A stretch of DNA of 64,000 nucleotides from Zygnema circumcarinatum SAG 698-1b. Its lineage: Eukaryota > Plantae > Zygnematophyceae. A program made the translations under genes and the position numbers. Within the stretch, counting starts at the first letter, position 1, and every line of letters begins with the position of its first letter. Below, in pieces: positions 8,801 through 48,600 of the stretch. The stretch is taken from assembly GCA_037447605.1 (NCBI GenBank), contig CM074804.1:248001-312000 (forward strand). Direction: 5' to 3'. Under the pieces are notes generated by a model. That model had not been told where the DNA came from. It saw only the letters and a program-made list of their open reading frames with translations, and made no database searches.

Positions 8801-11130
8801 AGCAGGCTACAGGGTTTGCTTGGCAAAGAAATAGATATGGGAGGGGGTGTGCGAGAGAGGATTCGAGAAGATGGTGAGAGAGATGTTGATGGTGGTGTTA
8901 ATGATGCAAAGAAGGGTGAGCAGGAGTCTGAAAGCAGCACAAGCGGAGAAGGCGGCAATCGTTCAAGCAGGATGAATGACTCCCAGGTTAATGAAATGGA
9001 GTTGAGAGGGGTGGTTGTGGGAGAGGAGGGGGCGGAGACGGTGAGAGGTGTGGGGGGAGAGGAGGATGAGGGAGGCGCTCAATCTTCCTGGCGTGAAACT
9101 GCAGATGGTGGTGATGCGATAAGAGGAGGTGAAGGTGTGTTAGGGAAAGGGGATGGTGTGATAATAGGTGGTGAAAGCGATGTGCGAGGTAGGGAAGATG
9201 AAGGTGGGCAAGCTGCTGGAAAGGGTACAGGAGGAGATGATGAAGTTGGTAAAGGTGATGTGAAGGATGTTGGTGATGTTGGTGGAGATGAGGCATCACA
9301 AGAGAAGGAAACGGGAGAGGAAAAAGAGAAGCAACCGGAACCGATGAATCAAGATCAGAGCTTACAACTTGATGGCGGTTCCACTTCCCAACCACTTGAA
9401 AAGTCTGGCGATAGTCAGGAGAGTCTGATAGGGGCTGAAGGGGCTAAGCAAGGAAATTCGACTGAAGAGGAGGGTTCTTCTGCAGAGAACAGCAGCAGCC
9501 GACAGGAGACAGGAGGTGATGTGATGGAAGGGAAGGTGGAAGTGAGTGATGTTAATGTGGGAGACGTTGTTAGAGAGGCAAAGGAGGATGAGGCAGTAGG
9601 GGAGAAAAGAGTGGAGGATGCGGATGCAGAACAAGTGCAAGGGCAGAGAGAGGCTGCTGAGAAGATAGGGGAAGCGGAGTCGAATGTCAAAAGTATTGAT
9701 AACTCTGGAAACACAGGATTTGGTGAACTTACGGCTATTAACGCGTCCGGCAATGCTACTGAGACTGCAGTGACAGGACCGCAAGGGGATAAGCAGGGAA
9801 GCTTGTTGTCTGAAGCAGGGGTGCTTCCAGAAAGTAAGGAGGAAGAGGGGAAGACTGTCGTACATGATGCGTCGGAAGATATCGAATTTCTTGAGGTACA
9901 ACCTGCGACTAAGGAGGGAGGTGCAGACGAAGTGAAAGGAGAGGGAGAGGGTGCGAAGGACGGCGAAAAAGGGAAGAGCAGCGCTTCTTCTGAAGGTGAG
10001 ACTGTGAGAGCGAGAGTCGTAGGCTTAGGGCTAGCAGTTGGGTGGGTTCTTGGATGGAAAAACAAAGTTATGGGTCCTATTCCTATTTTGTTAAAGTGTC
10101 CAACCTTAACTGACAATGGAAACAACCTAAACTTCTTTAACGTTAAGAAGCCCACAAACCTGAAAACTCTGATAAATCGGTCGGTTAATCGGTTAATAGC
10201 AATTATAAACCTGGTTTTATAATCGTGTGCAGGCTTGCCAGCAAAAGTTTCAAGACCGCCTGTTGCGAACGCTACCAAGTTCAGTGCTTACATTCCGGGG
10301 ACCAATGTGAACAGCCCAGAGCAGGTTCAGAGTGTGGAAAGGACCCTTTCATGCTTCAGTTCTGAAGGGCGTTGGGTGTACAACAAAACTCCTCGATGGG
10401 TTCCATGGGATTTAAATCCTCAAGATCATAGACAGCAACCCGATTATAAGTCGTGCGATATCGACCACAAGAAGTAAGTCAACTGTACTCTTTGTTTTTT
10501 TAGGGCTTGTAGTATTTAAGCCATTTGATAGTTTCGTAGAGCGTTGAGGTTTCTTAATGTTTACACACTTGCTGTGACCATCGTATGGATGCTATCAACG
10601 GGAAGTTACATCTTCGCTCTCGTTCCTCTTCCTCTGCCTTCGTTCCTCTCCCTCCCTACCTTTCCCTTCTCCATGTCGCCCATTCTGCACTTTCACACAC
10701 TCCCGCTTGCTGTCCCTCTCCCTTCTTCTCTCTCATTTTGGGCTCACTCTCTCACTTCGTCCCTCTTCCCGACCGCTTGAACTTGAAACTCATAGAAACA
10801 GATATAGAAACTGATCAAGGTAAGGAGGGTCGGTTTTGGCCTTTCAGACACCACGGTGGTGTGTACGGCGAGGATGCGGACAAAGAGTGGAAGAAGGGCG
10901 AATCTGGAAAATGGAGGGTTCGCAGGGAAATTAAATATGAATGGCGAACGAAATCTTGCAATTTCGAACAGTTCAACCGGGAGAGATTTTGTCGCGAGGT
11001 CGGAAAGCGGAACATAGTGATAGTGGGAGACGCTGCCCAACTGCAACTTCATGATGCCATGCTCAATCATCTCGTGACAAGCGAAACGAGAGCCGCAGCA
11101 GGCTGGCTAGGGGACGCCAGGTCTCTCCCC

Positions 11131-11200
<70 letters not shown>

Positions 11201-12135
11201 TCTCTCTCTCTCTCTCACTCTCGTTGATCCTCGATTTTCTAATTCCCGTTTGTTCACATAGTTGTTACGTTGCTCCGTTGAAAGTAAGAAGAAAAGCTTA
11301 GCTCAGATCTAGTCACAGCGATGGCGCGTGCGGGCGGGCGCATGAGAGAAAAAGGGGGAGGGAGAGGAGAAAGAGTGAGAGAGCGGGAGAGAGTGTGTGA
11401 GAGAGAGAGGGATTAGGTTACTCATTTGAGAGTATGTCTTTTTGTGTGGAGCAGAGCAAACAAGTCGGAGGGTGCTTGCGCTTTAAGGGGTCATCAGCTC
11501 TGCGGAGACATCCTTGGAGGAGAGGGAGTGAACGTCCGAGTAGTAAGGAACAACCTCCTCTCTCCCGACAAAGCGGGAGGAGGGGGAGCCAACAACAAGT
11601 GGCTCCGCCAACTCGGGAAGTGGAATGCCGATATTGTCATTCTCAACAGGGGAGCGGTGTACAGACCAAGTAAGGAGGGAGAGAATGGGAGATGGGAGTG
11701 AGTGGAGCGGGCAGAGGGAAATAGGGAAGGGTGAGAGTGACCAGGCAAGAGACAATGCGGGCGAGAGAAAGGGAGGTTTGTGGTTCAAAGCTGCGAGATA
11801 GATTTCTTCGGTTTGGGGGAATGAAAATTTATCGTTTTTTACCACTGTGGTTGATTTCTTTGAACTGAGATTGGTCTCGTTCTATGTGGTTGCTGCAGTG
11901 GGCGTATTTGTTGAGCAGTTAAGGGAAATGCTGGAAAAGCTCCGTTCGACTTATCCGGAAGTTCTCATCCTGTGGCGAAACACTCCTCAGGGTCACCCGG
12001 AATGTGGAAAATATGTTGAGGCGTTGAAGAAGCCGTTAGTGAATATTACAGGACAGAATTGGGAGCACTATCCTGCGCAGAATGATGCAGCAAAGCAGCT
12101 CATGAAGGTACCAAACCCACTTCTCTCTCTCTTTC

Positions 12136-12173
<38 letters not shown>

Positions 12174-12525
12174 GTGCGTGTGTGTCAGGGTAGGTGTGGG
12201 GGTGGATGTGAGCAAGCGAATGTGAGCGTTTGCAGGAGCGGAGTGTGAGTGAGGGCCTTAAGGAACTGATGATGATTTGTCCGAATGCTAATTCTTACCT
12301 TTGCATGGAGGAATGGAATTTCAGGAATATGGAGCTGTGTATGTGGATGTGGCTACTCCCACAGCCCTAAGACCGGACGGGCACCACCTTCTCCCTGACG
12401 GCACACGCGACTGCGTAAATTATTGCTCTCCCGGACCCATCGACCAATGGGTGACACTCATTTACAACACAATCCTCACCCTTAACAGACATTCTTCCTC
12501 CCCGAAATCAGCAGTCAAAGCTTAA
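2422..12525 (+). CDS. Type II membrane protein (~2070 aa) with two tandem TBL/PC-esterase (SGNH) domains, each preceded by a long acidic low-complexity stem
   Basis: 12 exons, all GT-AG with matching phases: 2422-2570, 3290-4944, 5360-5585, 5897-6166, 6566-6783, 7239-7456, 7658-9995, 10233-10473, 10848-11120, 11455-11669, 11899-12107, 12325-12525 (6213 nt). N-terminal anchor VTVVGVLATLVLLWLLGVTVW. Domain 1: GCSFEQFNREGFC..VVVGDS, WRNT, RPDGHH, DCHHYCMPGP. Domain 2: SCNFEQFNRERFC..VIVGDA, WRNT, RPDGHH, DCVNYCSPGP. Confidence 0.88.
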
Positions 12526-14819: not shown

Positions 14820-16100
14820 CTAGGCAGTGACAGTCTGCACCACCTTCACCCCCTTCCCCCCGGGCGTGACCTGCAGCTCAAAGCGCTTTCCGCGGAGCAC
14901 CACGTACATAGTTCCCGGGCACACGTAATCGATCAGCCGGTCCAAGCGGAAGGGCTCGCCGGGTTTCTGCAACAATTTCCACATAGAATAGACTCTTTAA
15001 AAAAATATGGTAAAACAGTAGGGGACTGTGAAGCAAACCGTGAAGGAACGCAGGAAAGAACAGGAAAGCGCTGTCTTTAATACTGTGGTGGAGGAAGAAA
15101 TAAAACAGCTAACCAACCCAAACCAAACCAGGAGGGCAAGGGGAATTGATAAAATCTAAGTAGAAGCGAAAGTCACCTGAGCACCCGAGTGGATCTGGAT
15201 TCCAGTGATGACTGCATAGTCAGAAGTTGCAGGGTTAACGGTTTGACGGATGAGGGACTCCACGTCTTCAGTGATAACCTGCTCGCCAGAAGTACACCAC
15301 ACAAACACTATTAGCTATTTGCACCGAAATATCTTAAATAGTTCCTCGGTGCTTCTCATCCAAATAGTTGCGGGTAAGAAAAGCATTCAGCTGTAAGCAG
15401 ATCCTCACGTTCAGAGCGGCGTTGGTGACGTCAACAAGGCTCGGCCCACCAGGACCCGCATTGACGCACTGGGGCTGCATCACAGCAAACAACCCAAAAT
15501 CAGCTTTGAAATTTATCTAAAGAAACAAAGAAAACCCACATTCCGATTCACCAACCTTTTCCCTTCCCGTAACATATCACAACTATTACACATCTGGGGT
15601 TCCCTCCAATTTCTGAACTAGGTTCACTTTTCGAAAGCTGTACTTCCCGAAAACTCCATTAAAGAAGGGCTCCAACAAAAATGTCTTGAACTTTCACCTG
15701 CTTGGCAATCTTCTTCTTGAGAGTGATGTACTCCGCATCGAGCTCGTCATCGACAATGGCGCCCCCCTTGGTGACGTCATTCTTGATGGCAATAAGGGCA
15801 CCACAAGCGTTGGAGGGCTTTCCGCGGCCTCTGCGGAGGAGGGATCCGACCTCGCCCGACTCGCCCACTGACACGTGCGGGAATGCAAAGAACACGTCTG
15901 CACAGATTCGAACATAGAGCGGCCGTTATGGGGAGGGGGAAAAAATGTTGATGGGTTCGGTGAGCTATGGCGGGAAGAGCGGTGGGGGGAGAGTAGGGCG
16001 ACAGAGAAATAATGTGCCGCTTGAAAGAGAAGCAGTTGTGGAGAGGAGAGATCAAGAGATGGAATGTAAAAAAGCGGGAGCTGTGTCAGAGAAAGGAAGG

Positions 16101-16178
<78 letters not shown>

Positions 16179-17905
16179 CTCACATCGTTCACGGGGGCGG
16201 CCGTCCACGTCGCAGGGAAACTCGGGGCTGTGGGACATGCCCGCCCTGAGCCCCGTCTTGCCGCAGTTCACGAGACCGCCCAAACCGGAGATGTTGAAGG
16301 ACATGCCGAACTGCTGGTCGATGTACGAGGCGAGAGGGCGGCACACCTGCGAATAGGAAAGGTAGGGCGTTTGATTATAATAACTGCTAAGCATTTTTTT
16401 TTTACGCCAGCTATTTTCTTCACTATGAAAACAGAAAAAGATCAGAGGGTACAAGGAGCAATAAACGTGGAGACGAGGAATGTACCTCATCACGGCAGGT
16501 GTTCACGAGAGCAATGCAGTTCTCCCTGCAGTTAAAACGATAAAAGTAAGCTTCAGCTGAAACAGACTTAAGTGAGGTAAACTGCTGCATCCAGTAAAAG
16601 TTCAGCAAAGAGATTACAGAGTAACAGAAGAAGAATACATAGAATAATATCACATTGCATGCTTGAGCTACTCACTGGGTGAAGCCGAGGGAGAACAGCT
16701 CCTTAGCTACGGCGCGGACGAAGACATCATCCGGCATGGAGTTGGGGAACTTCTCGGAAATCACTTTCACAGCAGTAGGGGCAGCCTGCATTCACACCAA
16801 TCATTTTCTTTCATTACTTTTCAAGTTCGCATAGTCTTTCAGGGTACTTTTCACATCTTTAACAATAAATGAAAATGCACATCACCCCCCCTCTCAACGC
16901 CTACCTCCCTCCCACTCCCCCTCCTCCCACCCTTTCCTCCCACTCCCCCTCTCATCACCTACCTCAGTCACACTCCTCGGAGGAAGGTAGAGGGGGCTTG
17001 AGGGACCCGGGATGTGGGAGGCAGCTTCCACTCCCGCGAACTTGGAGGCGACGGCGGCAGTGGCGGCGGGAGCAGGAGCCTTTTTGTCCTCCTTCTTGAG
17101 GACGTAGGCGAGGCCCGCAGCAGTCAGGAGGGCGGCGCCCGCGAGGAGGGGGACGGAGCTTTGGGACGAGGAGGGGGCGGCGGCGGAGGAAGAGACAGAG
17201 GCGAACTGCAGGGAGGAAGCAGCGCCTGCATGCGGGCGGAAGGGGGGGGGTGAGGGAGAGAGGGAGGGAGAGAGAGCGAGGGAGGGGGACGAGAGTGAGG
17301 GGAAGGGGGGGAAGAGAACGAGAGGAACGGCAATGAGAAACAGGGGCAGAAGTGGGAGACGTAAGATAAGAGGGGAGGGATGGAGGAGCCCTAAGAATGG
17401 AGAAAGCGAAAGAGAGAGTGAAAAGAGAGGAAGAAAGAAAATAGTCTGAGGGTGGAAAGAAAGTGAGATGAGTGAGGGGGGGGAGAGGGAGAGAGAGCGA
17501 GAGAGAGAGGTAGCCTGAGGGTAAACTTCGGGCGTACTTTCATTGGTGTTCTCAGTGGCCGCTGCGCGCACGACAAGGCTGGGGACCGCGGCGCGGCTCT
17601 TCCGGGACTGGGTCCCTGCTAAGTGCCAGAGACAGAAAACAGAAAAAGAAATTACCTTCCATTTTGCTGGCGGGCTGTGCGAATAGACCAGTACCGGGCG
17701 AGGTTGAGGCGAACAGTGTAACCACAAGACACTGCTGCTTCTGATCACGTCTCATTTCCAGAAGCTTACAGGGGGGCAGAGGTAATCCCTAAGCTTCTGG
17801 AAGCATCGAGAAGAGTGGGGCAAGGTTCCCACCTTGGAGGAGGCTGGAAGCATCCCGGGAGAGGCTCACGGTTCCGAAAAGCTGGCTCACTTGGAGGGCG
17901 GCCAT
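14820..17905 (-). CDS. LCIB: LCIB/LCIC-family (beta-carbonic-anhydrase-like) chloroplast protein, ~413 aa, with an N-terminal hydrophobic segment
   Basis: 10 exons in phase: 17905-17833, 17615-17538, 17225-16963, 16785-16676, 16525-16486, 16346-16184, 15897-15698, 15474-15409, 15278-15177, 14966-14820. Motifs NTCRDE, ISGLGGLVNCGKTGLRAGMSHSP, RERYVFFAFPH, SNACGAL and DYAVITGIQIH match the LCIB family; the Cys/His/Cys zinc ligands are present. Confidence 0.92.
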
Positions 17906-18179: not shown

Positions 18180-18700
18180 GGCGCCACGTGTAGCTTATGT
18201 CCTACATGGCGAAACCTGATTGGCTGATATGAACAACAATGGCCAGTTTTGCGTGTTCACACGTGCCAGTGAATCCGAGCGTGGTTCGGCGGCGACATGC
18301 ATTCCCGAGGACGCGGCGGTGTGGCTGCGGCAGAGGGTTCCTATTGGCCCACACGCGCCACGTGGCGTCCGAAGTGGCACTCGAGGCGGATATGTCACCA
18401 CGTTGGACACCACGTGGAGAAATGGGAAGTGCGGATTGGGTGACAGCGAATGAGGGGATTCGATGTGGATATGGCTGGATTCACACAGGTCGGTGGAGTG
18501 CGTGTCGTGGCACAATGGAGAAACCTGATTGGTTATCTTAGTGAGTCAATGTCACGTGACGGTGACATGGCGCGGAATTGAACTTTGATTCGAGAGCCGG
18601 GGAAGGTGCTTTCTGGATGGGCCTCCGAGTGACGTCATCATGGATCCGGCCGCGGACGCCAAGTCAAGTTCGTACTACAGGGAGACTGCGACACGTGGCA
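18180..18700. promoter_or_regulatory. Cluster of G-box/ACGT and CCAAT motifs upstream of LCIB
   Basis: CACGTG at 18185, 18359 (inside palindrome CGCCACGTGGCG), 18411, 18553 (GTCACGTGAC) and 18692; TGACGTCA near 18630; CTGATTGG near 18217 and 18525. Function is inferred. Confidence 0.45.
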
Positions 18701-19249: not shown

Positions 19250-19259
19250 GATGATGATG

Positions 19260-19342
<83 letters not shown>

Positions 19343-19364
19343 GGTGATGTTGATGATGATGATG
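19250..19364. repeat. (GAT)n microsatellite
   Basis: Read directly; source of the poly-M, poly-D and poly-I ORFs. Confidence 0.97.
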
Positions 19365-19923
19365 CAGTGAGTTAGTGATGGAACCACAAGCCCACCATCA
19401 CGAGGGAGCCATGGAGTGAACCGGCCCATTCCCACACACTGAATGCATACGAATGAGAAATGGCTTAAGTGGTGTTCCATGGACTAGGCCGTGCGTAGGG
19501 GCATGACTGCTCCCTTACAAGGAGCCCTGCTCTACACCATGGCGCCGTCCTTCAAGTTCTCCACCCTCTACTCCTATCATCTCTCGATATGGTCATTACA
19601 ATTTCAAGGGCGGCATAGTTGTGCCATTTGGCAGCCACCTCTTCTTAACCTTCTCCTTCCCTCCTCCCTCCCTCCCTCCTACACCTAAAATGCTTTCTCT
19701 CTCATAGGCAGTCCCCATCAGTCCGACTCCAAATCCAATAACCAGCTTCTGCCACTTCGCGTCACGTCACGTTTCTTCAAGATTCCGTTAAAGAAATCAG
19801 GGGCCCCTGTCTTTAATCCAACGTCGAATGAGAATTTTCGATCCAAAAAGTACCCTTGCTCAATATTCACATGCCCACATGCCAAGGAGAAATGAAGTCG
19901 TGAGTTCGCTTTATTTGAGTCGC

Positions 19924-22900
19924 TCAGAACCCTGCTCCAGTGGTCCGCTCCCCCACCGTCTCCCCGTACTGCGGCCCGCCGGTGCGGTACGCATACAGGT
20001 ACTCGATGGCCACACCTTTCAGCTTTTGGGGAACAATTCCGAGGTCGGCGAACTTCAAAGCTGCAGCATTCAGCTCAGCTCAGCTCAGCTCAGTTCAGTT
20101 CAGTTCAGTTCAGTTCAGTTCAGTTCAGTTCAGTTCGTTTCAGTTCCAGTTTCAGTTCAGTTCCAGTTTTAGTTTCAGTTTCAGTTTCAGTCCAAGCCGG
20201 TGTGGTACAAGTACGCTTTTGAGAGAAGCAGACGACCGTGATGAAGCAAGGAAGGGATAGGTAGGTCGATTGTGTCACGTCACGCGGTCACATAGACGTT
20301 AGCATGAGGAGGGATGGGGTCATCGGCTTTACCATCTTCCGCGACAACATGATCAAATGCGAGCGATTCGATGAAGTCGAGTGTGAACATGGTCGGGGCA
20401 GGAATTGGGAAGGGGACTCGGCGAAGCAGCAATTCCCGAGGGGTGGCCAAAACCTGTAATTTGAAATATCCCTCGAGGCCAATCAGGGAGTGCCAGCTGG
20501 CCACACGGGAAAGCTGCTTCTCCCCGTATCGTTATTTGGCTCAAATTCCCGACAACTGGCAACCAGGAAAGGGAGGAGAGAGGGAGAACTAGCAGAAAAA
20601 CAGAGCAGGGGGGACTCAAAGGAAGGGCTATTGCAACACTGGCCTTAGCTGAAAACAAAAGTTCTACTCAGAACTTTTTGTTTACCTTGGCAACTGGGAT
20701 CGGAATGCTGGTAATACGCGGAGTTTCTCGGATGGTCTCAAACATAAGCTCCACCTGCTCACAACTCCCCCCCCACCACCCCCCATACTATGATAATGCA
20801 CAATTCAGAACCCCCAACCCCTGTGAATCCCAGAATGAAAAAAACCAGAAAGTCTCAAAGTTCATCAAACTCCAAAGCTCCATATTTTCTGATACTTTTA
20901 ACGCACCATGTCTCTTATGGACATGACATCGGGTCCTCCAAGCTCATACACTCTCCCAATGCTCCTTCCGTCGTCCATTGCAGCCGACAGAACGGCTTTG
21001 GCCACATCCGCCACATGGACAGGCTGGAAACTGCCAAAAACCGACAACACAATGAAAGATAAGATGATGCAATGAGAAAAACAGTTTATGTATTGCAAAT
21101 TCAGAATCGAAATTATAAGTTAAAAATAAACGACATGAAAGAGATAGAGAGATAGGTGAGAGAGAGAAAGCAGGAAGGGGGAGGAGGGATGATTGCGAGA
21201 GCGAAGAACGGGAGGACAAACCGTTGATGAGACAGGTCTGAGGAAGTAAAAAGGAGAGAATATGACAAAGGGGTATGTGGAGAGAGAAGGCGAAACATGG
21301 AGGGAGAGACGGTATCTCCCTGCATGCACACTCACAGAGTCACTCCTCCTCCGATCAACGGAACAGCGGGCAGCTTCTTTGCTTGAATCGCCCACGAATT
21401 CAGCAAACGATCTTCCGTTCCAATCAACGGAGCCGCCCTCAACACAGTCGCCTGCAGACAGCTCCGCCATTCCCACAATTCCTACTCAGACGCTATGACA
21501 CTACAAAAATTCTGAACATGTAAGTGTTTCGGAATCTAAAAAGTGAAACGTGGAAATAACATTATTCTTATATCGATACATTCGCATGCAGAGTTAGGCT
21601 CGTGCATGCCTGCGGGAAGGCCTCAAAAGCAGCGGCCTCTCCTGCCGCCTTTGTTCGGTGCTGCTTTGAAGGCGCATGCGGAGAAGCCCCGAGACAGGAC
21701 AGCTGGATATACCGCGCTACATTTCCTTGCTCCGTCGAGAACTGGAAATCCGCCATAGAAAGAGCGTCAAATCACCTGGTTACTCGAGAGTAAACATTTC
21801 TCTCTCTCTATATATATATCTCTGCAAACTCCAGAGATGTACCAATATGACTTCAAGAATTGGGATGTACCCTGGCGATTTTCTCAGCTGCGGCGATGTT
21901 GATATCTTCAAAGCTGAAATTACGAGTCTCCCAATCGCGCCCTGCGTCCTATTCAGCATGTACCGCCAGTCAACTCCACAGCGAACAATCTAGGTACGCT
22001 GAAAAGGCGAGTACACATGGTAGATACACAAAGAACATGCCAGTTTAAGAGTTTACATGGAAAGGAAAAGGCCATAGTTCTCCACGAGAACAGAGTGCTT
22101 CTATGAGGCATACCGATTAAGTTGATGACTACATTCGACTTTGCCATAACTGAACGGATAGAATCATCGTCCCTGAGGTTGTACTTCAAAGGTAGCACCT
22201 GCTCCTCTCCCACCCCCACCCCATCTCTTTGACTTTAGTGAAATGCAGAAAGGTCCAGCTGAAGCACAAAATGTCTTTGAAAGGTTGATGGCAAGGGAGA
22301 GGAAGGGGTGGAAGGAGGGAGATGGGGAGGGCGGGAAGGAGGGAAGAGAGGGAGGGTTGAGGATAAATGAGAGACCACGCTAACAGAGGGGATCGAGGGG
22401 AGGACGAGAGAAAGGGACAGTCGAGAGAAACATAAACAAGGCAGTGACAGTGAGAGAGGGAGAGGGAGGGAGGGAAAAAAACACCTGTCCAAGGTCACCC
22501 ATGAGCTTCAGGTGGCGAGGCTCGTCATCCACTCCGCGATACGGAACCATCACTTGTGAACCCGTGCGAGCTGTCCTCACAAAAAACAAAATCATGCAGA
22601 AGGTGAGCTGAATGTGCGTCAAATTCTCCGCACTAAACTGATAGACAGAGAGACATTAGCAGAAATGACGGTACACTAAGAACAGTGATCTTTCTCTTAG
22701 ACTGCCAATAGTGATCTTTGTCTCAGATAGCCATTCATGCCGCATAGAACCTCAGTTCAGAGAAGAGCACCTACCAAGCATCTGTACAACGTAGCGCCCA
22801 AGGAATCCCGTCGCTCCGAACACGGTAGCAACCATTCCACTGCATATGAACCATAACCCATATGAAGTTTCAGCATAATGAACAGGGTTTGTAAGCCTTG

Positions 22901-23656
22901 TTAACGTACTCAGGTTTGAAACTCAGGGTTTCAAGTTTCGGGCACTATAAGGTACTCGTTTCATAAAATACACATGTTAACTCGCATAATCCAGACAATG
23001 TGAGCGCGTGGACTTTCAAGACGAAAAGCTTCACATAAGTTTTCAGTTGTTCAAGCAATACTTCCTGGAACGGGGGTAAAGTGCTTCAAATATTGCAAAA
23101 AAGCACCCAAAACTCTGCTTCCACGGGCTCCTCCACATGCAAATCCTAATCCTTTCCACGTGCGAATCTTCATCGTTTCCCACCTCATGAAACACTTATT
23201 CCTTCTCACTCAAAATCAAACGCGAGCTCTGATCCATCCGCCCGTCGGCTTTTGTGCAAACCCTAATAGACCACTTCAAACGCAAACCCTAATCCATCCC
23301 CCACTGCCAACCCTAACCGATCCATCCAAATATAAGGCCTAATATTTCCACTCTCTAACATGCGAAATCCTTCACCTTGCAAACTCTGCCATTAATGCAA
23401 ACCCTAATCCTACTCTCCCCTGCCGTCTGACACCCGAACCCTAATCATGGACGCACCTCACTGAGGACCTCCCACCCGGCCCCTTCGCTGTGATGTTGCT
23501 GCGTACTGCCAGAGATGACACGTGGCGCGCAGTCAATGCCTCGCTGCATCCGAGCTGCGGGATGGGCTCCTCGCGCAGCCCCGCCGCCACGGCGGGGCAG
23601 CGAAGGAGTGGAGAAAGGAGCTGCGCTCTACGCGCCAGCGGGCGGGCGGCAGCCAT
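19924..23656 (-). CDS. NDUFA9: Mitochondrial complex I 39-kDa subunit (NDUFA9, SDR fold)
   Basis: 11 exons in phase: 23656-23457, 22839-22775, 22570-22485, 22198-22114, 21941-21871, 21741-21610, 21451-21336, 21030-20907, 20754-20686, 20453-20333, 20060-19924. Motifs [72 protein letters not shown]. Intron 6 needs a GC donor. Confidence 0.96.
20070..20191. repeat. (CTCAG/TTCAG/TTTCAG)n array in the last intron of NDUFA9
   Basis: Read directly. Confidence 0.92.
23258..23445 (+). promoter_or_regulatory. Five telo-box-like motifs (AAACCCTAAT/AACCCTAA) in NDUFA9 intron 1
   Basis: Copies at 23258, 23284, 23309, 23399 and 23437, all in the same orientation. Confidence 0.5.
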
Positions 23657-24682
23657 GGCTGCTGCCAGACCCCTCCGGCGAAAGGGAGAGAAGGGGGAGT
23701 GAGGGAGAGGGAGAGGGAGAGGGAGAGAAGGCGGAGGGAGGGAGGGAGGGTGGGAGGGAGGCAGGGAAACAGCACGTTGCTGGCCCTAATGAATCCACAA
23801 TGTAAATACTTTTCAGCGCAAAATATCATTTGTCCCTGCCAATTTTGAAGGAATAATTCCAGTCCTAGTCCAATTTCTTACGATATACGGAAGCGAGGGA
23901 GGATCATTTCCGTGTCCGGCAGTTGAGCGTTTCGTAGACTTGAACATGTATGACCATAGACACGGCTTCAACGATTGTAAACGATAGATCCCGATATATC
24001 TTAACCGTATCGCGTACACGATATCATTCCGATACGAACATCACCTCCAGAAGGCTCGCAAGTTGCATCGCATGCATGTGTTGAACAACGGCCATGAACT
24101 ATGTCAATGTCGCTTGTTGAGTGCAATCGCTCTAGATCCAAACATCTAGACAGGCCTTGAAAAGTACTTCACCGTAGTGCAGTACTTCTGAACAAGTTCT
24201 ACAATGTCGGTAACTTCGGTAAGTCATTGTCAACAAGGCAAATGACTGCAATCGCACACATGAAACAGCAACGCAAACAAGCACAAACATCCCATGCTTC
24301 AATGTAAGGATGAACCACTGAATGCTTTTGAGACGCACCAAAACTTAACATAAATCGTCTCGAAAAATGGGACCCAAATGATGCATGCGAACATTGCGAT
24401 CCTTCTGGGAGGATTTGACGGCTCAATTGAGCTTCGTCATGGCTCCCTCGACCATCATCTAAACTCCGTTCTTTGTATGAATGGATGGCTCAAAAATTTA
24501 AATGAGAAGGGAAGATAGATAGGTTATATGCACATGTCCGACTTAGGAGTGGCGGTAACCGAAAATCGAAGGGAGGGCAGGGGCCCTGCCTGGTGGGGGC
24601 GAGTTCTCTATTCCAGAGAGGAGAGAAATGTGACTAAAAATGTTTAAAATTCTCTTAAATGTTTCTAAAGTGAAGAAAAAGC

Positions 24683-27600: not shown

Positions 27601-28102
27601 CCGACTTCGCGGTGACCGACGAAGAGTCCTTGGGCATGTCGATCGGAGACTGCTTCGTTCCCGTGGCGCAGAGAGACCCCCACTGCGAGGGACCCGCCAT
27701 GCTTCCATAGCTCCAGTCCTCCGCCATGGCGGGAGCAGGGCGGCTCAGAAGGGCGCAGGCAGGGCAAGCCATGGCGGCGGCGGAACCGGCGAGGGAGATG
27801 AGCTGGCGACGGCGGATAGGCCCACGTGGAGGGCAGGGTGTGGGTGAGTGGGAATGTGGGGTGGTGGGGGGCGGGGACGGAGGAGGAGGGGAGGAGGAGT
27901 TGATGGAGAGAGAGCGTGGGGAGCGAGAGGAGAGGTGGTGGATGGGGAGGAAGTTGGCGGGCCACGTGGCGGCGGCATTGGAAAGGCTGCCGGGAAGTGA
28001 GAGAGTATCGGGGGAGTAGGAGTCGTCGAATCTATGGTGACCGGGAAGGAAAGCGGAGCATTTTGAAAAGGAGAAGGCGACGGAAGCCATGGCTGTTGCC
28101 AT
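24683..28102 (-). CDS. CAH3: Alpha-carbonic anhydrase with a bipartite chloroplast/Tat lumen presequence (CAH3-like), ~372 aa
   Basis: 8 exons in phase: 28102-27527, 26941-26806, 26473-26443, 26296-26207, 25934-25862 (acceptor could also be ~25960), 25242-25161, 25024-24942, 24730-24683. Motifs WSYG..GPSQW, QSPID, QYHFHAPSEH, EAHLVH (three Zn-His), YSGSLTTPPCSEG, NSRPVQALNDR. Signal RRRQLISLAGSAAAMACPACALLSRPAPAMA|EDW. The alpha-CA call is firm; orthology to CAH3 is inferred. Confidence 0.9.
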
Positions 28103-28199
28103 GGCTGCTGCAGTGGGCGAGATAGTGGAAGAGGGAGAGTGGGAGAGGGAGAGTGGGAGAGAGGTGGGAGCGAGGCCCGACATAGAGCCAGAGGTGGGC

Positions 28200-29005
28200 T
28201 GAGCTCATGCGTGACGTTATGTCATGTCACGTCACGTCGCATAAACCTACGTCGTGTCACGTAGCGTAACGTCACGCCACGCTGACACGCGGGAGTTTGG
28301 GCCACAGATTGCGGATGAGCCGCGGGCCGACGCGGATAATCCGACCGCAGGAGGTGACGTGGTGCTGCGCCATTGGCTGACCTCCACATATGGCGGCTCA
28401 GCCAATGAGATGCGTTAGAGGCAAGTGCGAGTAAGTCATCTGATTGGGGCCCCGTTAGAAAAAACATGTAAGCCAATGATCTGCTGCCTTTACACGTGCA
28501 AAAGTACGATCTTATCGGATTTATGTCGGTCAAGCGCCGGATGCGGGGAGTAATTCACAATTTGGAAACGTGGCAAACAGCGATTGGCCTGAATTTCTGG
28601 AAGCCAAAAACTTCCGTACGCAAAAAGTGCACGCGGTTTTGAAGAGGGTGATGACGTGGCAATCTCCCATTGGATAGACACAAAAATGTAAAAGCCCTTG
28701 TCGGATTTCGAATCGCTTTTTGACTTTTTTCCGAATTTCGCAGATCTTTTGCGGCGATGCTGTTACTGTCGAAATGTTGCGCATGGAACGGCGTTGAAAT
28801 TGAATCACGGGAAGAGGAACTGTCGGCATGGATACAACCGTTACGGGCGAACGGAACTTAGCGGATGCATGTCGGGGCACGCGGCCACGTTGTTGTGCCC
28901 GTGAATGGTTCAAACTTGGAGAGTGAATTGCTAGTTCAACAACATCTTGCGCTTCCTAAAATATCGAGATATTCCTCTTCAAACCGTCCTTGGTAATGAC
29001 GTGGT
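28200..29005. promoter_or_regulatory. ACGT-core and CCAAT-rich region upstream of the alpha-CA
   Basis: Repeated GTCACGT at ~28225-28275; TGACGTGG near 28355, 28652 and 28997; CACGTG at 28493; several CCAAT/ATTGG motifs. Confidence 0.4.
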
Positions 29006-29291: not shown

Positions 29292-29488
29292 TAATTCGGT
29301 TGCTACTGAAGACTTGATACCGACGGAAGCTTTTCCTTTTTACGGAAATACAGATACTGTCCTAACGCTTTCTCCGATACACATGAACATGCTCTGCAGC
29401 TGTGAGAGCTCCATTCAAAATCGACATAGACTCTCAACAGTAAGAGCGAGAGAGAGAGAGATAGAGAGCGAGAGAGAGAGCGAGCAAG

Positions 29489-32429
<2,941 letters not shown>

Positions 32430-32446
32430 CTCCCTCCCTGCAGAAT

Positions 32447-35400
32447 TCAAGTCATGTTCGCCGCCCACTCCATGATGTGCGAGTACACCCGATTCCCCCC
32501 AATGTCCTCCCCGGAACTCCCCGTCGCCACTCTCAGTATATCCTCTATGAGAGCGAAGTTCCCCATGATGTCGACATGGCTCGCGCTTTGTGTCCCTCTC
32601 CCCTCCAATAGGCTCGTGGGGGGAGCGTGGTTGTACTCCCTCAAGTACACCTTTGACCCGGAGGGGTTGAACCTGGTCCTGCCCTTCCATCCCTTTGCGC
32701 ACATGAACCCCGCGCTAAGGGCGGGGACCGTTTCGTCGCCGTCGACGAGGAAGGCGCCGTCTTGAAGGCAGCCGACCTGCTCGCCCTTCACGCTGTTGGA
32801 GTCGACGGAGGCATCAATACGGAACGGGATCAAGCATGTGTCGTTGTAGGGGGAGAGCTTGTATATGTAGGCTCGTTCCGTTAGGAGGCCGACTCCGTAT
32901 AGGCAGTAGATTTCCAAGTCGGGAGCTTCGGGTAGTCTGTAAGAGTAAGCAATGCTAGAGTGAGAAAAAAAAACTGCCAAGAAACGAAAGATACTGCACA
33001 GATTACATGTAATTAGAAAGAGGAAAAGTACCGAAAAGACCAAAAAACCCACACAGAAACAAGGAGAGAGAAACCCTGCATTCATACCTTGTTTCAAGAG
33101 GGTTCGACCAATGTTTTGGGTGCGTGTACTTTGGGTCATCTAAATCGTCGGCGATTCCAAGGCCCCAATTTGCATCCGATCTCGCCATCATTTTGGGCGC
33201 CACTCTCCTTAGGAGGTCCGGCAGGTCCCCCGCGGTGTAGACTCCCCTCTGAGCCACGTCCTGAACTGTGCGCCAAGACATTTCCTGATACTCCGTCCAC
33301 ACCTCTCCACAGGTCAAATTCCGCGCCTTTCCAGAAGCTTCCGAGCCTTCTCCCGCCTGTACCGTAGCTCAAACGAAGGCGGAGAGAGACAGACAGAGAG
33401 AGAGAGAGAGAGGAAAAAAAGGTGGAGGAAAGAGGAGGGGGGGGGAGGGGAGTGAGAGTTGCAGGGGTTGAAGGAGATTAAGGAGGTTTAGAGTACTCTA
33501 GGTTGATGGGGTGTAAGGAAGAGTGGACGGGAAAGTTCTCTATAGAACAAAGCTGCTTTGATGGTAGCATGCTGAAATCAGCAACATGCACTACGGTGAA
33601 TCACAGTATCACTCTGATCTAACCTCTCTTCCCTTCCCTCTCGCCCTCTCGTCCTACCACTCTCTTCCTCCGATCTCTCTGGAACTGTTGCTCCCCCTCC
33701 CCCCTCTCCGCTCCCTCTCCCGCTCTCCCCCTCCCCCCTCCCCCTCCTCCTAACCCTCCCTCCCTCCCCCCTCTCTCTCTCTCACCTGCAAGTTTCCATA
33801 GGCAACCGGCTTTGGTAGCTCCTCAGCCGGAAGCAGCGATGCATCCCTTCCAAAGGCCACCTGTCATCATCCCATTTGGAGACCCTTCTCATACTCAGAG
33901 AGATATTTCACCTCCCACCCCCGCCCGTAAAAAAAAAGGGAGCTTCCAACATCCCCTACCTTCCCGAAAGCGATAAAAATGCTCTCTACTCACAATTCTG
34001 CCATAATGTGCTCTCCTCGTCCGCGGAGCGTCCTTGGCTGCTCTTCTATCTCCTCTCTCCTTCTCTCCTTCTGTCACATTGGGACTGTTTGGACAGCCAC
34101 AGTCAAAGCCCTGTTCTGGGGACCAATCAAGGCCTCCCCATATGGCATCTCCTCCCTTGGGAATCATAGACATAGTGGAATCCCACGTACGGGAGACTCT
34201 CATCACATGTTGGAGAGTCTGCAGGGTGTCCAGGAGTGGAGCAGGAGCTATTTCCCTGATCCAAAACAAAAGGAAGGCAAACAAGGGTGGACATGGTTGG
34301 AATGGAGTGTCTGAACTGAGCAGCAGGGAGGCAAAGTTCTTACACTGTCTCTCTCTCTCTGCTTGTCTCTACTCCCTCTCTCGCTCTCTCTCTCCACTTT
34401 CACTTCTTTCTCTCGCTCGTCTGATCTCATTCCTTTGACTGCGTTCACTATTTTCTTCGACTTCGCAGCACCTTCATTCAACTCTCCTCTCCACCTCTCC
34501 TTCCATTAAACTACGTCTCACTCACCCTCTCCCTCTACCATCCTTCCTTCTTCTCCATTCTCCCTTTCCCATTACTGTACTGTTCCTCTCACTGATACCG
34601 CTCTCCGTCTTCCCCTCCCTCTCCCCGTCCGCTTCCCTCCCATTGCTATCCCTTTCCACATTAGTTACCCCACTTCCTCTCACTTCCCTCGCTGCCTCTT
34701 CCACTCCCTTCCACTCCCTTCCACTCTTTCTCCCAGATAGACACTCTCCAGCTCTTTCCTGTTCTTCCGAGTTCTCCCCCACCTCCTACCTTTCCCTCCT
34801 CCCTCTCTCTCCCTCCATTCGACCGCACACTTTGCTCGCACACCCCCCATCTCTCTCTCTCTCTCTCTCTCCCTCTCTCTCTCTCACTCCCCCCGGAGCG
34901 GGTACCTTGCCACAGCTATATCCTTCGCTTCCGCAGAGAAGATTCCGCTAAAGGCTTTCGGAACGCCAAGGAGAGGACCTCCAATGTTCATCACCGCCTT
35001 TATGTTATTGGCGACCCACTGAGGGCCTCCCCCTCCTCCCGCAGGCGGAGGAGCTTCAACCCATTTAAGAAAAAACAGAAAATAAAGCGCTCCCATAGAA
35101 TGGGGTACCACAACCACTTTTTGGCCATAGTTGCTCTGCATAAAAACCGCTCCTTTCCCTCATCATTACTAAGTTTTACACTCTGATTGTTTTGCACGAA
35201 ACAATTAGTTGCGGGTTTGAAGATTTCAGCTCTCGTTTATTTCAAGCTAAAAGGTGAAACTCTAAAGGACATGTTTCTTGCGTAGCTATAAAATTCTATG
35301 ATGTTTAACGTTTCAGGGTACAAAAAGCAGAAAAAAATGTTCTTACCTCCACGAGAACTTCAATGGCTGCTTTGAGTCTACTCAAGCTTCGGTCCCGCAC

Positions 35401-43300: not shown

Positions 43301-44056
43301 CAATAGCGCCATTCAATGGATGAATGCTTTTGCCAGGTATTCATTTGTGGATACCGTAAACCTGAAACCTCTTCAGCATCGAGATGTATGCTTTCTTCTC
43401 TTTTCTTTATTCTTGAGACTTTCGGCCCATTCCGCATTGTTCCTATCTGCCAAAACGCAGCGTAAATGTGTCAAAAGTTTTTGAATGAAGCTTCAAAAAA
43501 AGCAAATGACAAGCCCTCGGAGGTGTTTGCCTCCATGAAGACGAGAGAGAGAGAGGGACGGGGAGTGGGAGGGGGAGGTGGGAGAAAGTGGCGGATCTAC
43601 ATAAACAAGTTGGGGGGACTTGGCACCTCCTCGATTTTTATTTTTATTTTTTTTTATTTTACATATGTATTTTATGCTGAAGGGGGACATACACCCCCCC
43701 TCAGCAAATATTCTGGATCCGCGACTGGTGTGAGAGGAGGATGTTGGAGGCCTGCTCACTGCATTTCTGTCAGAGCCTAAACGCGAAACGCCTTCTTTTG
43801 CCCATTTTTTTGCACAGCCTTGATGTGGATTTACTCCGATCTGTGCAGACGATTGCTGGAAAAGCGTGGCGACGTTAAATACATGGATTTTTGGCCTATT
43901 GAAGCTGCGAGATATTTAGACACGTGTGAGCGCCAGGAGGGGGGCACGTGGCTGAAGGATCTCCACTACAGCTGCGTCCACTCCGACATGCGTCAAATTC
44001 ACGGCGCTGTGGGGGAGGCCGTGGTGCGCGCATTCGAGCATTACCTTCTCGCGTAG
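40363..44056 (+). CDS. Membrane-anchored SGNH-hydrolase-fold protein (PC-esterase/NXPE-like O-acyltransferase or esterase)
   Basis: Exons 40363-40852, 41371-~41480/41517, 41600-41790, 42012-42367, 42771-43003, 43080-43336, 43849-44056; the exon 2/3 junction is unresolved and the others are in phase. Motifs IFLAGDSMTR, DLIVLGSGTW, VFWRSIPP, NAFARRLLEKRGDVKYMDFW, KDLHYSC. N-terminal hydrophobic segment FLSLVLLLSIA. Confidence 0.78.
43586..43727. mobile_element. 142-bp hAT-type MITE in the last intron of the SGNH gene
   Basis: TIRs (A)AGTGGCGGATCTA and TGGATCCGCGACTG; 8-bp flanks GTGGGAGA and GTGTGAGA (7/8 identical), as expected for an hAT TSD. Confidence 0.65.
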
Positions 44057-45639: not shown

Positions 45640-48600
45640 TAAGAAAATAACAACAAATATTTGACATATGAAGCAAAAACACAAAAACTATAAATGAATA
45701 AAAATCAAATAAACACTACAAGTTGAAGAGGGAATTTGACCCCTTTTATTACTGTTTTGCAATAATTGCGTAACCAATCTACCACTTCGACTTAATTGGA
45801 AGGGGAGGAATAACATACACTCATACACACAACACAAGCATAGGCAAAGGAACTGGAGGCGGTAGACTGAGGCAAGGGCAACATAGTAAGGGGCAAAGGC
45901 AAGGGAGGCAGGGGCAAGGGCAAGGGAGGCAGAATGCGGAATGCGGAATGCTGAATAGGGAATGCGGAATGCAGAATGCAGCAGCAAAAAAAAAAGCATG
46001 CTGCAACAGCAATAGCAACAATAGAAGCAGATAGAATAAAATATAGAATAAAGAATGGACAGATAGAATAAAAACAATTAGAAAAAATAACATATGTTTG
46101 GCATATGAAGCAAAAACACAAAAACTTTAAATGAATAAAAATAGAAGAATAAATAAACACTACAAGTTGAAGAGGGGATTTGAACCCTTTTATTACTGTT
46201 TTGCAACAGTTGCGTAACCAATCTGCCACTTGGACTTAATGGGGAGGGGGAGGAATAACACACACTCATACACGCAGCAAAAGCATAAGCGAAGGAACGG
46301 GAGGCACAAGCACAAGGAAGGGAAGACAGAGGCAAGGGTAACACAGCAAGGGGCAAAGGCAAAGGAGGCTGGGGCATGGGCAAGGGAGGCAAAATGCGGA
46401 ATGCGGATTGCGAAATGAGGAATGCAGAATGCAGAATACCAAATGCAGCATCCAAAAAATAATAAAAATTGCTGCAGCAGTAACAGCATAAAAGCAAAAG
46501 CAGAAAAAGCAGAAAAAGCAGCACCACTAAAAGCAGCAGCAGCATCATCAACAATATCAGCAGCATAAATAGCAGCAGCAATAGAAAAAGAAGAATAGCA
46601 ACAGCAGCAGCAAGAGTAACAGCAGGAACACTGCAATAGCAATAGCAGCAGAAAAAGAAGCAGCAGCAGGAGCAGCAGCAACAGCAACAGCAGCAACAAC
46701 AGCAGCAACAGCAGCAACAGCAACAGCAGCAACAACAGCAACAGCAGCAACAACAGCAACAACAGCAACAACAACAGCAGCAACAAAAGCAACAGCAGCA
46801 ATAGCAGCAGGAGGAAAAGCAAGAGCAAAAAAAGCAACAGCAACATCAACAGCAGCAGCAGCAACAGTAGCAACAGCAGCAATAGCAACAACAGCAAAGA
46901 AAAAGCAAGAGCAGAAAAAGCAGCACCAGAAAAAGCAGCAGCAGCATTAACAGCAACAGCAACAGCAGGAGAATAAGCAGCAGCACAAAAAGCAGCAGCA
47001 ACATCAACAGCAGCAGCATGAGCAGCAGCACGAACAGCAGCAAGAACAGCAGCAGCAAAAATAGCAAAAGCAGCAGGAGAAAAAGCAGCAGCAACAGCAA
47101 CAGCAGCAAGGGAGACAAGGGAGGCATGGGCAAGGGCAAGGGAGGCAGGAGCAGGGGCAGGGGAGGCACGGGCAGGGGCAAGGGCAAGGACTCACCGTTG
47201 CTCAAGTCCGCCGTCGTCACTTGCTCACCGGTCGCACTTTTGTCGTCGTCGCCGGCTCACCGCTCACCGATCAGTGGGGGGAGGCGAGAGGTCGCTCTGC
47301 TCGCTCCGCTGCAAGGATGTCTCGAGCGGTGGCGAAGGAGGAACCCTAAACCCTGAACCCGTGCTGATCTGAGCGAGCAGCGAGCAGGCGGGCAGGCGGC
47401 GGGAGCGAGGCGCCGCGGCGGGACGCCGCTCGCGCGGTGGTGACGCGCGTGGCGACAAAACGGAGGGCGGCGGGCTGCGGGCGGCGGAGGGAGCGCGGCG
47501 GGGCGAAAAGGGGGGAGTCAAACCTGGCCCGGAGATACCAAGGTAAAATAATTGCTCTCTTGAATTCGCGGCGCCCGAGCCTGTCGAACGTCCACTTTTG
47601 GCGAAAAAGGCCTGCCGTACAAAGCAGAATTGGCCCGACGGGCTTGCGGGGAGTCAGACCTTGACCATCGCCAAATCAATTTCGCCAGCCCTTCGGGCCA
47701 ATTCTGCTTTGTACGGCAGGCCTTTTTCGCCAAAAGTGGACGTTCGACAGGCTCGGGCGTCACGAATTCAAGAAAGCAATTATTTTAGGGTAGTGATATT
47801 TCCACCCCTTTTTTGGATCCAAACACCCCTTCCCGGCCGGGCAGATTTCAAAAGGGATTAAAAACAGAAAATGCTCTTTTCACACCTTTTTGGAATCGAT
47901 ACCCACCTTCTTCCGTCGGCTGATTTTATTTGCTAACCAAGGAAAATGATACCCCGTCACCGCATTTTGGAATACTGTATCCCGCCTCCCTGAATTTTTT
48001 TTTTGAGGGAAAGAAATATCTGCCTGCCCGAATCCGCTCGGAGCGGAAGATCCGTCCCCCACGAGATCGTACGCGGGTGTCCGTCCTTCACACGTGTGTG
48101 TCAATCGCATGTCGATTTCCCTCGCAGATCGCACCACTGCAGATCACCGTTCGATCTGCAGCCGGGCTCGATCTTAGCGAATGGAAAGCGCCCACGAGTC
48201 CCGTCAAAGCCAAACCGCACGTGCGAGTGCGCGCGTCCCTCGGCCCGAGATCTCGTCATTGTTACCTCCCAGCCAATCAACATCTTCCACGTGTTACATT
48301 TTGACGTGGAAATTTTTGATTGGTTTAAGATCTTAATGTACGAAATTTTGGGTTCCTCAAGTTGCGACCGTACGACATTTGTACGGACATACTTTTGAGA
48401 GGACTTTGGCGGGATACGTGGGCACCTGCCATGCGCTGTGACAGAGCCCGGCTGCCGATCAAATAGTGATCTGCCGTGTGGCGATCTGCGAGGGAATCGA
48501 CGGCTGCGATTGACCGCACGCGTGAAAAAAAAATTCAGGTAGGCGGGATATGCAAATTGGGTGACGGGTTATCATTTTCCTTGTTTCGCAGAAATAAAAT

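Follow-up and report, generated by a model that had tools for sequence, protein, structure and literature searches.

Models of the CO2-concentrating mechanism (CCM) hinge on the position that the stromal carbonic anhydrase takes in pyrenoid-based CO2 concentration. In Chlamydomonas, LCIB and LCIC (structures 5k5w for CrLCIB and 5b5x for LCIC) form a complex that is soluble in the stroma and moves to the periphery of the pyrenoid. In the hornwort Anthoceros agrestis, LCIB (AagrBONN Sc2ySwM_368.2612.1) that carries a C-terminal mVenus tag overlaps with the inner-envelope protein TIC40 and was termed "membrane-bound" in a preprint, and a second, independent preprint describes A. agrestis LCIB as a thin ring under the chloroplast envelope. 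Here we describe an LCIB gene from a 64,000-nucleotide stretch of Zygnema circumcarinatum SAG 698-1b (NCBI GenBank assembly GCA_037447605.1, contig CM074804.1, positions 248,001 to 312,000 of the forward strand; this whole stretch is called the window, and all coordinates refer to it). One N-terminal helix probably anchors its protein in a chloroplast membrane, and a helix of the same kind is found in LCIB proteins of other streptophytes, including a hornwort.

The hornwort studies argue that envelope LCIB is optimal if thylakoids, not starch, form the diffusion barrier, but they do not give the molecular cause of the localization, and neither of the two preprints mentions a transmembrane segment in LCIB. 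The LCIBs of Chlamydomonas and Ulva, both without such a segment, are stromal. A third known system is the theta-type carbonic anhydrase Pt43233 of the diatom Phaeodactylum, which likewise has an LCIB-family core and an N-terminal extension that sets its sub-plastid location, but which is soluble and lumenal according to Kikutani et al. 2016, as cited in another paper. For single-pass proteins of the inner envelope, the sorting literature distinguishes two routes, namely stop-transfer, which leaves the N-terminus in the stroma, and re-insertion after import, as found for TIC40 and TIC110. TIC40 is re-inserted by means of a signal ahead of the transmembrane domain (TMD), a stretch that is rich in Ser/Pro and contains a conserved Pro; the stop-transfer protein ARC6 lacks it. 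LCIB itself, the LCIB family and the hornwort envelope localization are already known. In the literature searched, which covered neither the journal article of Robison et al. nor Jin et al. 2016, there was no mention of an LCIB anchor, of its conservation in streptophytes, of its occurrence in a pedinophyte or of a TIC40-like layout.

Structure of the gene and its catalytic core

The LCIB gene lies on the minus strand from 17905 to 14820 and comprises 10 exons that encode 414 amino acids, with GT-AG borders at every intron. A slash marks the putative processing site in the following list of its parts.

17833..17905, minus strand: exon 1, with the ATG at 17905 (context AACCATGGC), the first 24 residues of a transit-peptide-like leader and a GT donor
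17538..17618, minus strand: exon 2, the remainder of the leader, encoding ...AVPSLVVRAAATENTNE and ending in ...SLVVRA/AATENTNE, a stromal processing motif of the V-x-A/A type
17155..17225, minus strand: exon 3, first part, a Ser/Ala/Pro-rich spacer (aa 52-75) with the conserved (Q)FASVS motif and no Lys or Arg
17098..17154, minus strand: exon 3, predicted transmembrane helix VPLLAGAALLTAAGLAYVL (aa 76-94)
17080..17097, minus strand: exon 3, basic flank KKEDKK, immediately C-terminal of the helix
16963..17079, minus strand: exon 3, last part, a linker rich in Ala/Pro, about 40 residues long, that ends with ...LPPRSVTE at the core junction
16785-16676, 16525-16486, 16346-16184 and 15897-15698, minus strand: exons 4-7, core of an LCIB / theta-type beta-carbonic anhydrase
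15474-15409, 15278-15177 and 14966-14820 (TAG stop), minus strand: exons 8-10, rest of this core

Read in order, exon 3 (17225-16963) encodes AASSLQFASVSSSAAAPSSSQSS, the helix, KKEDKK and the Ala/Pro-rich linker, which leads on to the LCIB core. An earlier note, made from the sequence alone, had proposed an LCIB homologue with a built-in membrane anchor at 16963-17905, which is exactly the range of exons 1-3, and all the peptides that it quoted for the leader, the linker, the helix and KKEDKK are indeed encoded on the minus strand. The leader is Ser/Ala/Arg-rich with a single acidic residue, and from the motif we infer a cleavage near VVRA/AA; motifs with VRA followed by A or S are also found in relatives, 25-35 residues ahead of the helix.

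The gene model is supported because its intron positions and phases match the genomic structure of relatives from Closterium (P0012) and Klebsormidium (P0207), whose exon maps could be solved exactly for this comparison. A phase-1 intron between RE(R/K)Y and VFFAFPH and a phase-0 intron before (P)QC are common to all three genes, and the window and Klebsormidium genes agree in the position and phase of four further introns, including a phase-1 intron immediately upstream of the ASV motif. The note's remark that the whole anchor sits in one exon is true of the window gene, but the intron closing exon 3 is missing from the Klebsormidium and Closterium genes, so that the anchor is not a conserved exon module and the idea of an exon-shuffled module had to be given up. 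The note had also named skipping of exon 3 as an outcome that would speak against an anchored protein. Exon 3 has 263 nt, and skipping it shifts the frame and leads to a stop after 70 residues, which rules out a soluble isoform made in this way; the first Met downstream of the helix falls within the core. In relatives known from transcripts (P0188, which stems from an SRA run, and sequences from EukProt transcriptomes), the module is in frame. Intron 6 of the gene contains a (GA)n microsatellite (16100-16175).

That the protein is an LCIB homologue is confirmed by matches of PF18599 (LCIB_C_CA) on three exons (exon 6 with 43.9 bits, exon 7 with 49.4 and exon 9 with 27.1, at a cut-off of 25), by sequence similarity to the Chlamydomonas structures, for which exon 7 alone suffices (CrLCIB 5k5w, E 5.9e-10; LCIC 5b5x, E 2.6e-08), and by the fold of the ortholog P0188, which is 74% identical to the window LCIB. 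The AlphaFold2 model of P0188 has a core with pLDDT values of 85-97, and Foldseek aligns this core with 5k5w at E 2e-20, a target TM-score of 0.85 and an rmsd of 2.7 A. The window LCIB retains 46 of the 46 columns that are invariant in a 38-member family alignment, including the motifs CRDE (C186), FPH at 249 (H251) and ACGAL at 274 (C275). The zinc-binding residues were assigned according to Jin et al. 2016, as reported in a paper citing it. Judged by its sequence, the core is that of an intact LCIB-family carbonic anhydrase, for which activity is predicted. With CrLCIB and LCIC it shares the family, the fold, the Cys/His/Cys and CRDE motifs and the role of a plastid CCM protein, while the identity of its core to chlorophyte sequences is about 30-35%.

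The hydrophobic helix and its conservation

The segment VPLLAGAALLTAAGLAYVL has a Kyte-Doolittle (KD) mean of 1.98 over 19 residues and is the sole stretch of that length in the protein above the usual threshold of 1.6. When the exon-3 peptide was modeled by AlphaFold2 together with the family alignment, a single helix was obtained at peptide residues 24-45, corresponding to aa 76-97 (22 residues), with a pLDDT of about 88 in its centre and with the remainder of the peptide as coil. The charges around the helix are distributed asymmetrically, as the 25 residues ahead of it contain no Lys or Arg and the 6 residues after it contain 4 Lys. The residues ahead of the helix are also enriched in Ser and Pro, whose combined fraction in the 25 preceding residues is 0.52 in the window protein and 0.32 in the family mean, against 0.12 in the core.

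Relatives were retrieved by homology searches with single exons, of which the exhaustive search with exon 7 gave 215 matches, and two word searches that started from a sequence of Closterium and one of a hornwort contributed further named relatives. In each relative the core was located by a hidden Markov model, and the region upstream of it was then scored for hydrophobicity. The best two matches of the exhaustive search (P0001 and P0004) turned out to be spurious, representing tandem-repeat proteins with RRRGRPSS-like motifs. About 60 relatives (44 distinct segments) possess a Gly/Ala-rich hydrophobic stretch with KD values of 1.5-2.4 that is located 22-63 residues ahead of the core. The module is present in almost all of the full-length LCIBs that were retrieved from streptophytes. 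Such helix carriers are found in Klebsormidium nitens, K. subtile, Mesotaenium endlicherianum and Netrium digitus, in many paralogs of Closterium, in one of two paralogs of Coleochaete scutata and in the hornwort Nothoceros aenigmaticus, whose LCIB (P0206) has a helix of this kind with KFRSK after it. In Mesostigma viride, a weaker form of the motif was identified by eye alone (LPLAVGGSLATVGW...SKAR). Among chlorophytes, the tandem-LCIB protein of Pedinophyceae sp. YPF-701 has the helix, then YKMGKK and then an Ala/Pro linker, whereas the LCIBs of the Volvox, Parachlorella and Chlorella-like types have no hydrophobic segment ahead of the core (KD <1.3).

The order of the module is constant in the alignment: FASVS is followed by a Ser/Pro spacer, a Pro-initiated helix with an aromatic residue near its end, Lys/Arg residues, an Ala/Pro linker of variable length (22-63 residues among the relatives) and the core start AAPAAL. 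Of 63 sequences, 56 have a Pro at the N-terminal edge of the helix and 51 have an aromatic residue in its last third. The charge pattern is shared as well, since the relatives typically have 0 Lys/Arg in the 25 residues upstream of the helix and 1-4 within the 12 residues downstream. It is mainly this conservation in about 60 relatives, and not the hydropathy of the single sequence, that gives the helix its significance. The comparison of N-termini that the earlier note had called for, across chlorophytes, streptophyte algae and a hornwort, finds the helix in streptophytes and its absence in the Volvox, Chlorella and Parachlorella types. Clade-wide conservation and charge pattern together support the note's reading of a membrane anchor; the anchor is built in, as the note had it, but it is not peculiar to the window gene, being common to streptophyte LCIBs and one pedinophyte.

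In a tree of the core, the window LCIB groups with streptophyte LCIBs, which bears out the note's assignment to a streptophyte type. Its sister is P0188, a transcript from SRA run SRR8128902 (74% identity, SH-aLRT 99). Together with transcriptome and metagenome sequences (the latter including P0013 and P0003, relatives from metagenome samples), the window LCIB adjoins a clade of Netrium and Closterium, and Coleochaete, Mesotaenium, Klebsormidium and the hornwort branch further out. No relative exceeds 77% identity to the window LCIB, except for one match to a 27-residue fragment. Presence and absence of the helix are explained by two changes on this tree, one separating the chlorophyte outgroup from the streptophyte clade and the other a loss in one Coleochaete paralog lineage.

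Several further observations were made among the relatives. The two paralogs of Coleochaete scutata, P0198 with the helix and P0197 without it, may form a natural pair of an anchored and a soluble protein. The pedinophyte protein P0027 (L006:1001-4432) and P0023 of Mesostigma viride are both tandem two-domain LCIBs, of 774 and 866 aa, respectively. Among land plants, LCIB has been described as confined to hornworts (Li et al. 2020). Two LCIB-family proteins of 256-269 aa from the lycophyte Diphasiastrum complanatum (P0219 and P0111) begin at the core and have neither a leader nor an anchor; the Diphasiastrum protein joins the hornwort on long branches of the tree, and its placement is unsure.

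Proposed mechanism and choice of membrane

We think it probable that this nuclear gene encodes a carbonic anhydrase of the LCIB type which is targeted to the plastid and held at a chloroplast membrane by one N-terminal helix that is not cleaved off. What we infer here is the topology, the host membrane, the processing site and that the mature protein keeps the helix. The leader encoded by exons 1-2 would direct import and would be removed near VVRA/AA. At its N-terminus, the mature protein would have an uncharged Ser/Ala/Pro tail, about 30 residues long, followed by the helix and KKEDKK. According to the positive-inside rule, the basic flank of a membrane helix remains on the stromal side, so that the short N-terminal tail would cross the membrane, while the core, together with the basic flank and a flexible Ala/Pro linker of about 40 residues, would remain stromal. 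The likeliest membrane would be the inner envelope, reached on a TIC40-like route in which full import is followed by re-insertion from the stroma, and this re-insertion would be directed by the Ser/Pro-rich stretch together with the helix. At the chloroplast periphery, the enzyme would hydrate CO2 to bicarbonate far from Rubisco, trapping CO2 that comes in and recapturing CO2 that has leaked from the pyrenoid.

By analogy, we favour the TIC40-like route and the inner-envelope site because the LCIB module shares the layout of a Ser/Pro stretch before the TMD. In TIC40 and TIC110, the transit peptide is followed by a Ser/Pro-rich stretch that includes a conserved Pro, then by a single TMD near the N-terminus and finally by a large C-terminal domain in the stroma; the likeness to LCIB is one of layout, with no sequence homology, and TIC40 differs in having a second processing step. 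The localization data come from Anthoceros, whose LCIB is, like the window protein, a streptophyte LCIB. The window LCIB is not the hornwort ortholog, as it groups with zygnematophyte-like algal sequences and the hornwort is found on a long separate branch. The note's statement that hornwort LCIB has been reported at chloroplast membranes agrees with the overlap of A. agrestis LCIB and TIC40 at the envelope. As the LCIB of the hornwort Nothoceros bears the helix followed by KFRSK, an anchor is the simplest explanation of the Anthoceros images, and the helix probably accounts for the presence of hornwort LCIB at the chloroplast envelope. The stromal LCIBs of Ulva and Chlamydomonas fit such a split into anchored and soluble proteins.

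A number of points weigh against an anchor at the inner envelope. The helix is Gly/Ala-rich and only moderately hydrophobic, and when aa 1-139 were shuffled 20000 times, 602 of the shuffled sequences (3%) reached its KD peak, which makes this single-sequence test a weak one; with shuffling restricted to aa 45-139, 133 of 20000 did so. In the AlphaFold2 model of P0188, the equivalent segment is unstructured (pLDDT <50); the N-terminal 150 residues of this model are detached and not packed on the core, and the region equivalent to the linker is disordered. The Coleochaete paralog P0197 shows that the helix is dispensable in some LCIBs. Exons 1 and 2 of the window gene were placed by splice signals and reading frame alone. 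The experimental localization for the helix-bearing clade comes from hornwort only and from imaging, and the link between helix and localization joins a Nothoceros sequence to Anthoceros images, that is, two different hornworts. Finally, the TMD itself is a sorting determinant according to the literature, and the sequence does not separate envelope from thylakoid.

This last point leads to the main rival of the inner-envelope site, according to which the same uncleaved anchor and stromal core would reside in thylakoids, either in stromal lamellae or in thylakoids around or through the pyrenoid. Swaps of the TMD alone switch single-pass proteins between envelope and thylakoid, and the sequence cannot discriminate between these membranes. 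The pyrenoids of zygnematophyte-type algae are starch-sheathed, unlike those of hornworts, and given this pyrenoid type the best position of LCIB may differ from that in hornworts. However, the sole experimental data from a clade that bears the helix show LCIB together with TIC40 at the envelope and not on thylakoids, and the Ser/Pro-rich stretch with its conserved Pro ahead of the TMD resembles the inner-envelope re-insertion signal. We therefore regard a thylakoid location as unlikely, though as the alternative that has to be taken most seriously.

It is more improbable that there is no membrane segment at all and that the Gly/Ala-rich patch is part of a disordered extension, which would serve protein-protein contacts or be lost with the transit peptide. 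The lack of a predicted helix in the P0188 segment, the KD values of the family, which go down to about 1.5, and the modest outcome of the shuffle test for the window protein would all agree with such a patch. On the other hand, length, position, N-edge Pro, C-edge aromatic residue and basic C-flank are conserved although the flanks diverge freely, AlphaFold2 predicts a 22-residue helix for the window module itself, and hornwort LCIB co-localizes with an integral envelope protein.

Less credible still is a cleavable bipartite presequence with the hydrophobic stretch as its H-domain, which would make the protein a soluble carbonic anhydrase of the thylakoid lumen like the diatom theta-type enzyme. 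The stretch does come after a stromal-type transit peptide, an Ala-rich sequence comes next, and LCIB-family enzymes of diatoms can be lumenal, as a citation of Kikutani et al. 2016 states. The window extension differs from that of the Phaeodactylum enzyme in having a basic C-flank and in lacking both a basic n-region and a c-region with AxA. A thylakoid-lumen signal requires a basic n-region and a short c-region that ends in AxA, and neither element of such a Sec or Tat presequence is present in the window LCIB. The 25 residues upstream of the stretch are free of Lys/Arg in the window protein and most relatives, a twin-Arg (RR) is absent ahead of the window helix, and among the helix-bearing relatives RR is seen in just one (P0194). 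The helix is directly followed by the four Lys of KKEDKK and not by a short, polar c-region with AxA at its end, and the first AxA (AVA) occurs about 17 residues further on, within the Ala-rich linker. The absence of a basic n-region and of RR and the position of the Lys residues directly after the helix thus argue for an uncleaved anchor with a stromal enzyme and not for a lumen signal, and the C-terminally tagged hornwort LCIB is peripheral and not thylakoidal.

Just as unlikely is a stop-transfer in the TIC channel, by which the N-terminus would be stromal, the helix would stay in the inner envelope and the intermembrane space would hold the LCIB domain. Although this is an established route for single-TMD inner-envelope proteins with stromal N-termini (ARC6, APG1), the basic flank is C-terminal of the helix and by the positive-inside rule belongs in the stroma, the helix-edge Pro and the Ser/Pro-rich stretch ahead of the TMD typify proteins of the post-import class and are not found in ARC6, and a CO2-hydrating enzyme outside the alkaline stroma suits CCM models poorly.

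Putative promoter region and neighbouring loci

The intergenic region upstream of the LCIB gene contains a cluster of G-boxes, and two neighbouring genes were recognized in the window.

18185..18697, strand not assigned: putative promoter, intergenic, in which six perfect G-box palindromes (CACGTG) are located 280-790 bp upstream of the ATG
19900-23660, minus strand: plant-type NDUFA9 gene (39-kDa subunit of complex I), with one exon matching plant complex I structures at E 6e-11 and an extent determined by eye
10235-12525, plus strand: PC-esterase / TBL-like gene, with PF13839 on the last exon

CACGTG occurs 22 times in the whole window, where 4.0 occurrences are expected, and six of these fall within the 513 bp of 18185-18697. 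As far as the sequence goes, this cluster suggests a light control of LCIB of the bZIP/bHLH type. Motifs of the type ATTGG/CCAAT were seen by eye to be interleaved with these G-boxes, and smaller CACGTG clusters are present at 27823-28498, 43921-43950 and 48091-48293.

The window is a nuclear locus of a streptophyte alga and not human DNA, and LCIB, PC-esterase and NDUFA9 are plant or algal genes. A bestrophin-like sequence was looked for in the window and none was found. In Klebsormidium nitens (DF237159.1, L003:1-1471), a bestrophin-family gene (PF25539) is the divergent neighbour of LCIB, and both are core CCM parts. Pfam gave no match on eight long open reading frames of the window. From about 29300 to 32700, the plus strand consists for some 3 kb of nearly pure purine (GC skew 1.0 and AT skew 0.998 at 30001-32000), and this tract yields artificial open reading frames of 1000 aa on both strands. 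There is also a long intergenic (GAT)n run at 19255-19365, and TCAGC/TCAGT pentamer repeats are found at 20065-20190 in the 3' region of the adjacent gene. The only Rfam match in the window is a tRNA at 46165-46235 on the minus strand, with 30.2 bits against a gathering score of 29.

Implications for the LCIB family

The conserved anchor would supply a molecular reason for the envelope localization in hornworts, and it would make the anchored design an old and widespread one in the lineage toward land plants rather than a hornwort novelty. It also leads to the prediction that a streptophyte LCIB is unable to relocate with the CO2 level, unlike the soluble Chlamydomonas complex. In practical terms, the module of about 50 residues could position a carbonic anhydrase at the envelope in engineered crop chloroplasts.

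Because the anchor is found in Klebsormidium, Coleochaete, zygnematophytes, hornworts, a pedinophyte and probably Mesostigma, one may go further and ask whether it represents the ancestral state of LCIB in the green lineage, which would make the soluble Chlamydomonas-type LCIB/LCIC derived and an envelope-tethered carbonic anhydrase the original design of the green CCM. We consider this a tentative idea that is rather doubtful at present. If it were true, a passive CO2 trap at the envelope would predate the pyrenoid-peripheral LCIB, and the Ser/Pro stretch, the Gly/Ala helix and the basic flank would together constitute a portable envelope-targeting tag for crop CCMs.

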